64,000 nt of DNA from Cercozoa sp. M6MM (lineage: Eukaryota > Protista > Endomyxa: Ascetosporea): assembly GCA_040357565.1 (NCBI GenBank), contig JBDODJ010000002.1, one strand, 5' to 3'. This document shows positions 19,196 through 24,529 of this stretch, piece by piece. The position numbers and the translations under genes are program-made. How positions within the stretch are numbered: position 1 is the stretch's first letter; every line of letters begins with the position of its first letter. The notes beneath the pieces are model-generated. The model was not told the origin of the DNA, ran no database searches, and saw nothing but the letters and a program-made list of their open reading frames with translations.

Positions 19196-19478
19196 CCGGA
19201 CCTGTCAGACGTCATCCGTCGGTACGTACGGTCGGGTACGTATGACCAGAATTTCCGCCCGGGCAACGAAACGCTACCTAGCAGTACGGTTTATAACCAA
19301 CGTGAACAAAGCTGTTAAAACCCGTTGGACTGTCGGAAATTTTTCAGTTAGGTTTACTACTATTTAAACAGTGCGTGCGTATACGCATGCGTACGAGCGA
19401 GGAACGAGGTTGAGGATGGTCGCCGCGCGTCATGGGCACATGTGCCGCTGAGTCGAGTTCCCAGTTTGTTCCGCCAGT

Positions 19479-20492
19479 TTAGCTGTGGGCCGGGTAATCA
19501 CCACTCATGGCAATAATGTAGGAGATGCCAAGAGAAGGCTGGTGCTTGTTCACTGTGACATCTCCGGTTGCCGTCAGTTCCACGGGTACCTAAAGATTGC
19601 GGAGTGTAATTCCCTCAGTGTACATACAGTACTATACAGTACCTCCACTGTCGTAGGAGCACCGGCGCCAACCGGCGTGACACCGGGAAACGTGTTGAGG
19701 TCCATCGTTTGAATACCCACGGCGTCAGCACTGAGCCCGAGGACAACCATAACAAAATTCGATTGAGAGCAAAAGCAGCAAACTTACGGATCGGAGAAGC
19801 TTAGACCGGTATCGAGCAGAATACGACCAGGTGAGAAACTGCCTGCTCATCATCGGATGCAGAGCCATCTGCGAGGAACACAAGCTGAGCAGTCTGTACT
19901 TTGCGGGTTGGTGCTGGCGCTGGCAAACGCGACCTGCGGTGTGAACGCAGGAACTGCCGTAGCCGGGATATCAACGTCCAACGTCTGTTGGTTTGAGGAA
20001 ACTTGCACTTGCGAGATCGACTCATCGACTCCGAACTTAGCTCCAAGATACACGGCTACAGTAAACCAATATTGCCTTCGTCCACAGTAGGCCACATGGT
20101 TCATAAGCACAGTTTAACTAAACCTACGATCCAGTCCGGGTGCAATTCCAGCTCCAACAGGGACGCGAGCGCGAAGATCCGGCAGACCAAAGGTGGAGAC
20201 ACCGTTGCCACCATACGTGGTGCCAAGAATGCTGAAGAGTGCCTATTTTAGATACCTCGAATTGATCGAAATTTCGCAAGGATTGAATTCGAAGTGGTGT
20301 ACCGGGTTGTCGTTGATTGGCAGGATCTGGCCATCACAGAACGCGTAGCCGACAGGCGCATAGTTACCTGCGAACAGCTTGATCTCTCCCTGCAAGGGAA
20401 CATGCCAAGCACTTTATTTAAACAGTGCCTCCCCTCCGAAGTCACTGCAATGCGGCACATTGAAATTCAGTTCAACTCACAAGAATGGGCAT
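19479..20492 (-). CDS. Phage tail-collar domain / microcystin-dependent (MdpB-like) tail-fibre protein, 207 aa, 7 exons
   Basis: Exons 20492-20481, 20389-20303, 20242-20128, 20055-19900, 19842-19788, 19730-19643, 19589-19479 (624 nt, open frame). Translation MPILGEIKLFAGNYAPVGYAFCDGQILPINDNPALFSILGTTYGGNGVSTFGLPDLRARVPVGAG...NKHQPSLGISYIIAMSGDYPAHS*. Both the N-terminal collar motif and the C-terminal QPxLxxxYIIAxxGxxP motif of the bacterial family are present. Confidence 0.92.
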
Positions 20493-20602
20493 GTCTGGAC
20501 GGTTCTCAAGGGAGCTTTCCTGGCGTAAGTGTAGGTTTTGCAAAGGGAATCCGGGTGCTGCAAAAGACCAATTATGGCGGTTCACCAACTCCCGGAATTC
20601 CA

Positions 20603-20699
20603 CACGTGTTCCAATACACGAGAGTCGTCGATCGATCACCTGGGCCACTGATCGATCAGTTGGGTTATTGATCGATCACTTGCTACACGTGACTATTGG
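20603..20699. promoter_or_regulatory. Phased palindromic motif array upstream of the tail-collar gene
   Basis: GATCGATCA at 20630, 20650 and 20670 (exact 20-bp period), flanked by CACGTG at 20603 and 20686 and by CCAAT (20611)/ATTGG (20695). Confidence 0.55.
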
Positions 20700-20907
20700 T
20701 ACAGTTGACGGGAACACAGATGACATTGTTCGGTACAGTAAGTTTATTCATTCAACGGCTGCCTACTTTACCCCATAGTCAGGTCGATACAAGTACTGAC
20801 AAACAACTTCAGTTTCGTTTTCGCTGTCATGATGGATTGAAACAGTCCTAGCAGCACTGCGACTAAACAGAACAGAAATCTCCGAGGCTGCCGTCTGAGT
20901 GTTCCGT

Positions 20908-21736
20908 TCAATGTCGAAATAACTCAACTCGCTGACGCACAACCTCTCCGTTGGCCACAAAAGCCAAGTGCAGCTGTGTTGACGAAGGCAGCAAAGTCAG
21001 AGCACGCTGCAGCGCGTCACAGGACGGTATGTCTTCTTCCAACACAATTGCAGCCGCTCGTGGCACCGGAGGTTTCGATCGCTTGAACGACGCGCTTTCG
21101 TCGTACGTCAAAACAACATGCGACTCGGGGAAGATGTCTCGCAGTCTTGCGCACAACTCGTTCGTTTCGAACGGCGCTTCCTCCGAGTCAGGACGACTTC
21201 GTTTACATGGTAACACGCTCGCGCTGCTTTCGTTCGAAGCCTTCTGCTGTTCGAGTAACTTTGCTGGTTTTTTCGCCATTTTTTTACGTTTTTCGGTTTG
21301 CTTCGCGGCCATGCGCTCGCGATTTCGCTCGATTTCCGCATTCGCTTCGCAAAGCACCTCAGGCGGCATGTCTCGACCGTTCCACAAGTGCGTTTGAATC
21401 TCCCGAGCAATTGACGACTCTGAAGCGGCAAAACGGACATCCTCCAGCACGCACACACAGTTTTGCGAAACCTCTGCACAAGAAATCTTGCTGGATACAA
21501 GCTTGACGAACACAACAGATCGACTCACCTGAGCTGAGTTGAGATGCCGTGATACTGACCCCATTTAAACCGATAAGCGTCAACAACGACCGACGCAACA
21601 ATAACAAGGTTTCTGATGGCGTCAAACAGTGCTTGCCTCGCACGGTGCCGCCATAACTTCGCAGCACACTTCCACGCGGACGCGTGACTATCGTCAGTCG
21701 CTCACGAGCATACCACACACCTTCTGAGCACACCAT
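20908..21736 (-). CDS. tRNA-splicing endonuclease subunit Sen54-like
   Basis: N-terminal GVWYARERLTIVTRPRGSVLRSYGGTVRGKHCLTPSETLLLLRR and C-terminal IPSCDALQRAL...LHLAFVANGEV match the Sen54 N- and C-terminal patterns; one 55-nt intron. The start codon is uncertain. Confidence 0.62.
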
Positions 21737-21985
21737 GTGCCAAGACACACTGAACTAAACCCAAAAAAGTCGTCTGTTGCACTAAAAAAGCCAAACAAAA
21801 AGCCATACTGAGCCGACAGAGCTGATACGCAAGAGCGAGCATCCTCAGAGGCCCCAAGACGAGTCACGATCGGTAGGAAGTCGGGAAATTGCTGGGCTGA
21901 GGCGTGTGCGTCGTAGTGGCCGTGCTGAGCGACTTTTTACAGTTTGGAAAGTCGAGCCCAGTGACCGGCGAGTGCACCAGCTGCA

Positions 21986-24529
21986 ATGGAGACTCTCGGC
22001 AAGGCGTGGAACAGCGTCAAGAACTCGGTCGACCAGCACATCGTGCGTTAGCGCCCCGCGAGCGTTTCTGCGCATTATTTTCCTGTGTGTTTTGGGGGTT
22101 TTGCAAAGCTGTTGGGCGAGATAAAAGCGTTCCATGTGAAAAACAGGGCACTGATGTCGAGCTTCGCGTGAAAGAGGCTACAAGCAACGAAAACTGGGGC
22201 GCGCCAAACTCACTGAAAGCAGAAATCGCTCGCTACACGTTCAACTATGAGGAGATGCGCGAGGTGATGATCGTGATCTGGAAGCGTCTCGGCGAAAAGA
22301 AGCGCAACTGGCAGGTATCTACTTGCTTTCTCCCATTTGTTATCGACTCCATACGTCCCCCGTAGATGGTGTTCAAGTCGTTGTCGCTGCTAGAGTACCT
22401 CGTCAAGAACGGCAGCGAACGCGTCGTCGATGACGCTCGCGATCACATGTATGACCTTGACTCCTTTGCCTTTTTGCCTTTTCTCTCCTTTACAACTTTG
22501 CTCCCTCGGTGTAGTTACCAACTGCGCATGCTGAACACGTTCCGTCACGTTGATGAGGACGTACGGCTTTTATGCTTCCTCTCGTCAGCATGGTATATAT
22601 CGCTTGGGATATAGGGCCGCGACCGAGGCAACGGCATCCGCGAATTGTCCAAGCAACTTGTCGAACTGCTCGAGGTTCTTTCACACTGAGGGCAGAGGGA
22701 CAAAGGATGTACAGTTTCGGTGTATGCGTACAACAGGACCGCCGGCAGCTCGAGCAGGCGCGCGAAGAGGCGCGCAAGAACGCCGCCAAGTTCCAGCAAA
22801 TCCGCGGCTCCGCGCGAACAGGCGGTGGTAGCTACGGTGGCTATGGCGGTCGCAGCGGTGGCTACACTGGTCGTAGTGGTGGCTACGGCAACCAAAGCAG
22901 TGAGTACGGTGGTCAAAGTGGTGGCTACGGCGGCCCCAGTCGTCGTTACGAGGACCGACCGACGAGGGACGTGCCGAGGCGCGAGACATCGTCATCGTCG
23001 CCTTCGTGGGATGCTCCGCGCACGCCTGAGCGACGCCGTCCTGTACCCTTCTCCCATTTTGACCTCTTGCACTCTGCTTTTACCCACCCGTATGGCAGGA
23101 ACAAGACAGAAAAGCGCACCAGAAGCGCGCGCAGAAGCGACAGGGTGCTTAATATCTGGCACACGTTAGAGGAGCCTATTGCAAAACGAGGTGACCTTCG
23201 CATGTGTGCAGAGATGTTCGATCCGCGTGCCGCCAAACCGAAGCCAGTCAAAACTGAGCCGAAGCCCGAGCCGAAGCCAGCGGCGAACGATGATGACTGG
23301 AGCATGTTTGAAACGGCGACCCCTGTCACCACGGTACACTGTTATCCCTCTTCCTTCCTTCCCTCTTTGCGCCTTTGACCAACACCCTCGCAGGCTCCAA
23401 AGCAGGATGCCGAGAGCGCGTTCGCATTCATCCCGGTGGCGCCGTCGGCCAAGACAGCACCGACTGCGAGCACTGTTCCGAGCACTACGGCTGCGCCCAG
23501 CACTGGTTTTTGACCTTTGCCTTCTTTCCCTTTAGCTTGCTTTACCCCAGCTACCCTCCTTAGGCAATGACGACCTGACCGATATGTTCGCTGCCATGGC
23601 CGTGTCGACGACTACGGCGGCGTCTGTGCAAGCTATCCCTGCTCCTGCTGCCGATCCTGTGGTCAATGAGTTGTTCAGCGGCATGTCGCAGCCTGTGCAC
23701 TCTGGTAACCTCTCTTCGTCCGTATGAGCTTCATTAGCTGTATGTTGCCTGCAGGTGGCGTCACGATGGGCGGAACCAAGCTTTCGTCCAAACCTAATCC
23801 AGCGGAGCAGCCCAAGAAACAGTCTGCCGCTGCCGACTCGTACCCTTGCTCCTGGCTGTTTACCCTCTTTGTGCTTTTTCCCCATAAACTCCCACCCTAC
23901 ACTCGCTTTTGGGCCTGCAGTTGGGGCATCGACAGTGCGCTGGTCGACTTTACCGACCTCGCCGCGGCCAAACCCGACAAGAAGAAAAAGCCAGCGGTGG
24001 ATCTCGGCATGCGCGGTGCTCCGCGCGGAAGCGCTCCTCAGCGCGGAGGTGCCACCGGCAACTACGGCTTGGGTACGGCGACTTCGTCGGGTGCCACAGA
24101 CATTTTTGGTCTGCCTGCGGCGAGCAACGCGCCGACTCAAATGACTGCTCCCACTCAGATGAGTCGCATGAGTCACATGGGCCAAATGGGTCACATGGGC
24201 CAAATGGGTCACATGGGCCAGATGACGCCACAGCAGATGCAGCAGATGCAACAGATGCAGATGCAACAACAAATGCAGATGCAGCAGATGCGCATGATGC
24301 AACAGCAACAGCAACAACAGCAGTTTGGTATGATGGGCGGCACCATGGGCGGCGGTATCGACCCCTTCGCGCAGGTCGTGCAGAAGCGCTCGCAGCCTGC
24401 CACCACGACGACGCAGTCATCGGTAGACGTTTACCCCACAGCCTGCCCTTTCGTGTACAAATATAACCCTCATTGTAGAGCCAGAAAGCCAAACCGCAGA
24501 GCGACGCCTTCGCCGGTCTCGGATGGTAG
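21986..24529 (+). CDS. ENTH-domain protein (epsinR/CLINT1/Ent3-like)
   Basis: VKEATSNENWGAP...IWKRL...NWQMVFKSLSLLEYLVKNGSERVV; acidic-aromatic motifs (DDWSMF, DLTDMF, LVDFTDL); Met/Gln-rich tail; ends DAFAGLGW-TAG. Confidence 0.92.
24170..24322 (+). repeat. Coding tandem repeat (18-bp unit encoding GHMGQM) and Q/M-rich microsatellite-like tract in the ENTH gene
   Basis: CACATGGGCCAAATGGGT units repeated about 3 times, followed by CAG/CAA/ATG codon runs. Confidence 0.8.

Follow-up and report, generated by a model that had tools for sequence, protein, structure and literature searches.

Small bacterial collar proteins of the MdpB type (Pfam family PF07484) carry the Collar domain right after an N-terminus of the form M..PF(L/I), have an LPDLR motif and a glycine-rich linker, and end in QPxLGxxYIIAxxGxxPxR(S/N). 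We know of no cellular role established for the collar family, even in bacteria. In this work, we have analysed a gene of this kind in the genome of the amoeba Cercozoa sp. M6MM, where it is one of five paralogues. All the features just listed are common to the amoeba and the bacterial proteins, both are multi-copy, and the amoeba protein P0152 is collinear with the bacterial proteins over its whole length. In contrast to the bacterial genes, the amoeba genes have six introns and eukaryotic promoters, their copies are dispersed rather than in tandem, and a His-free insert of 12–15 residues replaces the bacterial PxHxH. The second system that can be compared is the receptor-binding domain of T4 gp12 (1OCY, 1PDI, 5IV5), which matches P0152 and forms an intertwined trimer of a type that is predicted for P0152 too. 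However, gp12 is a protein of 527 aa that includes a long shaft and an N-terminus for binding the baseplate, while the amoeba protein is a knob of 207 aa; gp12 binds zinc via HxH, and the amoeba proteins lack the His pair at the aligned site; and gp12 acts extracellularly on lipopolysaccharide, whereas the amoeba protein has no export signal. As in other transfers from bacteria to protists that were followed by intron gain, a prokaryotic gene is found in a bacterivore with host GC, intronised, duplicated and under purifying selection. It differs from those cases in that the collar family has no characterised eukaryotic role and in its unusually dense introns: a coding sequence of 624 nt has six, and all of them apparently predate four duplications.

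The amoeba genes represent a variant of a known bacterial family that is eukaryotic, rich in introns and devoid of the metal site. We propose that a small bacterial chromosomal gene, of the type annotated "MdpB / phage tail collar", was acquired in one ancient transfer, the source probably being marine prey bacteria. Six spliceosomal introns and promoter elements of the host type would then have been added to the gene, which later duplicated to five dispersed loci, each kept by purifying selection. In the proposed protein, three intertwined chains would form a compact knob similar to the end of T4 gp12 that binds the receptor, with a new lineage-specific middle part in place of the zinc-holding HxH site; either a homotrimer or a mixture of paralogues is possible. 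Given that the protein lacks both a signal peptide and a membrane segment, the trimer would most likely be a cytoplasmic binding or scaffold module. Taken as a whole, from single ancient bacterial transfer to retained cytoplasmic knob, we consider this explanation probable.

The window gene and its paralogues

M6MM, since described as Lemnamoeba sinaloensis (Apofilosa, Rhizaria) (PMC13746701), is a marine amoeba isolated from fish gills, with a draft genome of 23.67 Mb in 2244 scaffolds and an annotation pipeline trained on transcript reads (PMC11069148). Flammeovirga and Pseudorhodobacter, which share its culture, serve as its food, and its genes have 13 introns each, with a mean of 82 nt and GT/AG ends in 99.5%; the describers report no Introner signal and leave the mechanism of intron origin open (PMC13746701). 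Neither paper mentions the gene analysed here or a transfer into the collar family (PMC11069148, PMC13746701).

The window, a stretch of 64,000 nt from contig JBDODJ010000002.1, holds the gene on its minus strand at 19479–20492 (Table 1). An exhaustive GT..AG search, using the intron sizes proposed in the first-pass annotation and running from the ATG at 20492 to the TAA, recovered the seven exons and six introns that this annotation had claimed, as an open frame of 207 codons. Three further splice choices with those sizes also leave the frame open, as do shifts of 3–6 nt to GT or AG dinucleotides near the boundaries, so that the sequence by itself leaves some splice boundaries unfixed. The chosen model is fixed by two comparisons: the six larger exon pieces are conserved in the four paralogues, with counterparts at every locus (41–100%), and the contig-19 paralogue, when read by the same plan, is letter for letter the NCBI protein MES1908403.1 (hypothetical protein MHM6MM_001350), labelled P0152 here, which was modelled by the transcript-trained pipeline. 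One splice model with an exon 5 of 3 nt was discarded, as exon 5 is conserved in all paralogues (59–100%).

Table 1. Predicted features of the collar gene and its upstream region (window positions)
Feature	Position	Strand	Basis
Palindromes GATCGATC, three, 20 nt apart; candidate host cis-regulatory element	20630-20678	.	145-185 nt upstream of ATG
Exon 1 (MPIL: ATG and three codons; GTGAGT next)	20481-20492	-	splice search
Intron 1, 91 nt, phase 0, GT-AG	20390-20480	-	splice search and paralogue plan
Exon 2, first half of Collar (profile 1-29)	20303-20389	-	Pfam E 2.1e-10, 40.8 bits
Intron 2, 60 nt, phase 0, cuts Collar at 29/30	20243-20302	-	identical split at 5/5 loci
Exon 3, second half of Collar (30-57, LPDLR) and glycine-rich linker	20128-20242	-	E 8.2e-12, 45.3 bits
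Intron 3, 72 nt, phase 1	20056-20127	-	splice search and paralogue plan
Exon 4, lineage-specific middle; His-free insert at the place of bacterial PxHxH	19900-20055	-	alignment
Intron 4, 57 nt, phase 1	19843-19899	-	splice search and paralogue plan
Exon 5 (SFSPGRILLDTGLSFSD)	19788-19842	-	59-100% identity in four paralogues
Intron 5, 57 nt, phase 2	19731-19787	-	splice search and paralogue plan
Exon 6	19643-19730	-	conserved in paralogues
Intron 6, 53 nt, phase 0	19590-19642	-	splice search and paralogue plan
Exon 7, C-terminal strand motif HQPSLGISYIIAMSGDYP, stop TAA 19479-19481	19479-19589	-	motif common to bacterial family

The identification as a Collar protein of the MdpB type, made in the first reading from the letters alone, was borne out when the gene was run exon by exon against the 57-position profile of PF07484: exons 2 and 3 each score above the gathering mark of 24 bits, and exon 7 carries HQPSLGISYIIAMSGDYP, which corresponds to the bacterial C-terminal QPxLGxxYIIAxxGxxP. 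Along its length the protein is collinear with the bacterial ones, from the N-terminal GEI to the C-terminal QPSLG..YIIA..G.YP.

The same annotation had treated this as a single gene. An intact, intronised gene it is, but not a single one, since PF07484, when searched against all six frames of the genome, found five loci (contigs 2, 19, 625, 298 and 966), each with the domain split at 29/30. All five are readable as open frames of 205–208 codons with shared intron positions and phases (0, 0, 1, 1, 2, 0). Their first exons, of 12 or 18 nt, encode MPIL, MPDPFL, MSEPFL, MPFI and MPIL, matching the bacterial N-terminus M..(D/E)PF(L/I) ahead of GEI. Between paralogues, protein identity is 53–76%, dS is 0.5–2.0 and dN/dS is 0.13–0.35, values for which, as for the trees and the open-frame check, the joined window frame was used. 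Five open frames with such dN/dS values rule out a reading as pseudogenes. The introns, with a GC of 0.24–0.54 against 0.56–0.65 in exons, show no similarity to one another, and identity between introns of paralogues (0.49–0.58) is no higher than expected from shuffled introns (0.52).

As read from these sequences, the collar family is old and functional, was intronised before it duplicated and is under purifying selection; the five paralogues would have arisen after the transfer and after all six intron gains. The window copy is very probably a real and intact nuclear gene, its expression and exact junctions being predicted from paralogue conservation and one deposited model. Two full-length protein searches, which did return the contig-19 copy, did not return the window copy or the other three paralogues (contigs 2, 298, 625 and 966); in the public annotation, these four appear either to be missing or to be wrongly modelled.

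Flanks, assembly and promoters

On one side the window gene is flanked by an MBOAT/DGAT1 gene (E 6e-17), and on the other by a gene with a Sen54 N-terminal domain (E 1e-5) and then an ENTH gene, all by Pfam, in agreement with the DGAT1 and Sen54-like neighbours noted at first. The ENTH gene is itself split by an intron at window 22365/22366 (Pfam profile position 57/58), a further sign of very high intron density in this genome.

The draft assembly comes from a culture that contains bacteria, and bacterial contamination or a chimeric join had to be considered, all the more as Flammeovirga and Pseudorhodobacter were in the culture (PMC13746701), the authors marked 0.6% of the M6MM genes as suspected contaminants (PMC11069148) and three of the paralogues lie on contigs of 5–16 kb. 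A bacterial gene, however, would be uninterrupted, and at five loci the frame is broken by six spliceosomal introns. The contig that has the window copy among eukaryotic genes is at least 322 kb long, another paralogue is on a contig of 134 kb, and the GC content of the gene is host-like. Logan unitigs, an independent build from the same run (a DNA run, the one public run in which this region was found, with no RNA run among the matches, and probably the source of the assembly), tile 19435–20068, 20039–20676 and 20647–22900 with 30-nt overlaps across the gene, connecting it to the Sen54/ENTH side, and the depth over the gene (957–1194) is within the flank range. The chance of contamination is therefore negligible; contamination and chimerism, the latter at the flanks having been named as a point to check, are effectively excluded. 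Between the convergent 3΄ ends of the DGAT1 and collar genes, at window 19371–19400, there is a GC/AT-alternating palindromic stretch, GTGCGTGCGTATACGCATGCGTACG, and the Logan unitigs listed end on both sides of it (loose ends 19387 and 19393).

No neighbour gene is common to the paralogues, as the neighbours differ at every locus. A class-C GPCR gene adjoins the contig-966 paralogue. Upstream of the contig-625 paralogue and head to head with it is a long coiled-coil open frame (L012:1490-2320, minus strand) with many weak coiled-coil Pfam matches, which is absent beside the other copies.

The promoters have an element in common. Two copies of TGATCGATCA are found in the window against 0.04 expected, and the palindrome core is present at −130 to −185 in four of the five paralogue promoters; in three of these four it comes with TGATCGATCAA and then an ACCCA-rich stretch. 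Genome-wide, TGATCGATCAA has 104 sites, compared with 5 for a reversed control, and is often arrayed, which argues for a host element rather than one private to this family. We suggest that the palindrome is a candidate site for a dimeric host factor, which would define a regulon. Arrays of TGATCGATCA with a spacing of 10 or 20–22 nt are seen at many loci (L160–L168, for example L160:1807-2603 and L165:694-1968), often by GTGACCA-like words; ten long open frames beside such arrays gave no Pfam match and no functional clue.

Bacterial relatives and the probable donor

Full-length searches, as well as the structure and trimer models described below, were performed with the contig-19 paralogue P0152 and not with the window protein. 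P0152 covers positions 1–57 of PF07484 with 95.8 bits. Among the best 120 of its 8000 matches, the full-length relatives are bacterial, with 42–48% identity over 99% of the length; these are proteins of 170–215 aa that agree with P0152 at both termini and are annotated as "phage tail protein" or "microcystin-dependent protein", and their named hosts include Nonlabens, Polaribacter, Algibacter and Cellvibrio. In the ESM Atlas, the nearest clusters listed are all 98–100% bacterial. In two trees, which answer the call for a phylogeny with bacterial homologues, all five proteins of the amoeba group in a single clade (SH-aLRT 98–99) nested among bacterial sequences. The nearest branch consists of two Logan proteins (support 53 and 93), followed by P0339 and a Cytophagia MAG, and the nearest relatives of the clade include P0168, P0295 and P0339.

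The middle of the protein is a different matter, because its 115 residues in P0152 match, among 5.8 billion proteins, P0152 alone. Pattern scans for exon 4 in bacterial genomes and metagenomes gave no confirmed relative, and none of the NCBIfam models matches the amoeba protein or that of Nonlabens. A search of representatives with exon 3 gave 8,836 matches at E ≤ 0.001, and the 150 matches listed are all long proteins with several Collar stretches. Most of the best-scoring metagenome and genome proteins (P0006–P0150) hold exactly three Collar stretches, and many have 400–600 aa; such chains may be single-chain pseudo-trimers of the collar fold.

The first-pass annotation had left the donor as bacteria or phage. 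Our results favour bacteria and speak against a phage tail fibre. A viral donor would mean that a phage, a prophage or a giant virus provided the tip of a virion fibre, as could be expected from the original definition of the Collar domain in phage tail fibres and from the match of a paralogue to T4 gp12 (E 8.8e-5); moreover, IMG/VR contigs carry full-length homologues with 37–45% identity, near the bacterial values. The best of these IMG/VR matches, however, are on contigs of 2–5 kb and are possibly bacterial fragments, and no full-length match in 50,697 records of cultured phages exceeds 28% identity, the higher identities there (38–44%) being partial and covering only residues 8–86 or 2–115. 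Both the small size of ~200 aa and the precise ends of the protein suit the free-standing bacterial arrays, and searches of the amoeba genome for sheath and Baseplate_J brought up no other virion gene. For these reasons we consider a viral donor unlikely. In bacteria, collar genes occur in tandem arrays of 2–5 beside housekeeping genes, and among the neighbours checked no phage genes were found. Two loci (L020:4001-6825 and L037:2822-4546) have head-to-tail arrays of 3–5 similar genes of ~180 aa beside Nqr and formyltransferase genes. By sequence, the donor looks like a free-standing chromosomal array of this kind rather than a phage tail fibre.

Since the ancestor was bacterial, all six introns would have been gained after the transfer. 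The claim of an intronised and retained transfer agrees with the host-type introns, the eukaryotic genome around an intact gene and the dN/dS of 0.13–0.35; transfer, intron gain and retention are supported, and we hold a bacterial origin and the reality of the gene with high confidence.

Trimer model, location and possible function

By sequence, the only solved relatives of P0152 are those of T4 gp12, matched by residues 6–77 (1OCY, E 8.8e-5). As a monomer, P0152 was modelled poorly by AlphaFold2 (pLDDT 52.8). In three copies, the model reached an ipSAE of 0.89, compared with 0.25 for the best control, a mark attained by 21 of 30 proteins solved as one-chain pairs and by none of 23 solved as single chains. 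The pLDDT was ~76, and the runs agreed in at least 84% of contacts, which involve the LPDLR region as well as the C-terminal strand. The model fits an intertwined homotrimer; the trimer proposed at the outset is thus predicted for the paralogue, although the score may come from the memory that the model has of solved gp12 trimers.

In bacteria, the glycine-rich linker is followed by (Q/E)xPxHxH, a motif of which at least 90% of 75 aligned sequences keep the P and the first H. None of the five amoeba paralogues has PxHxH, and the His-free insert of 12–15 residues is found instead.

What would be the role of these proteins in the amoeba? The literature searched offers no eukaryotic role for the collar family, as had also been stated at first. 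A fibre or adhesin used in an extrusome, in attachment or in recognition of prey had been put forward in the first-pass annotation, either secreted or packed in an organelle. The idea has its attractions: phage relatives bind cell-surface receptors, some bacterial homologues have signal peptides, the amoeba is bacterivorous and forms adhesive uroidal filaments (PMC13746701), and one paralogue lies head to head with the coiled-coil gene. But in all five paralogues the Collar domain starts at residue 5, which leaves no room for a signal peptide, and neither a signal peptide nor a transmembrane segment was found (the top 19-residue hydropathy is at most 1.17), nor a C-terminal anchor. Export is unlikely because of this position of the Collar domain and the absence of a hydrophobic segment. 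The protein of 207 aa has no fibre shaft either, and neighbours vary from locus to locus. The search for other tail genes that had been suggested gave no match to sheath (PF04984) or baseplate (PF04865, Baseplate_J) in the assembly of 23.6 Mb, although both profiles matched in controls; Gp10_C (PF21939) was silent in the genome and in the controls too. With no sheath or baseplate genes in the assembly, the collar proteins are probably not part of a phage-tail-like machine, and we regard a secreted or organelle-packed adhesin as very unlikely.

The most likely location is the cytoplasm, as judged only from the lack of targeting signals. That the protein works there as a trimeric binding or scaffold module is our tentative proposal for its function. 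A more specific version, to which we give very little credence, is that five co-regulated collar trimers without signals build or cap a structure in the cytoplasm that is peculiar to this lineage. The ribbon of packed tubules behind the name Lemnamoeba could be taken as an example, with just as slight a likelihood. If true, a bacterial fibre-knob protein would have been recruited as an intracellular structural polymer of a eukaryote.

The amoeba proteins represent a eukaryotic, metal-site-free branch of the collar family, presumably cytosolic and under purifying selection, which suggests that the collar fold is useful outside the phage context and provides a new system for asking what this fold binds. 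The palindrome, ~20-fold over-represented genome-wide and present in four of the five promoters, points to recruitment into host regulation. The family also offers a dated set of intron gains, six in a coding sequence of 624 nt, which would have occurred after the transfer and before the five-fold duplication; the mutual dissimilarity of the six introns is consistent with a gain mechanism that does not involve transposons. In a genome that is unusually dense in introns, this dating of intron gain may be the most useful aspect of the finding.
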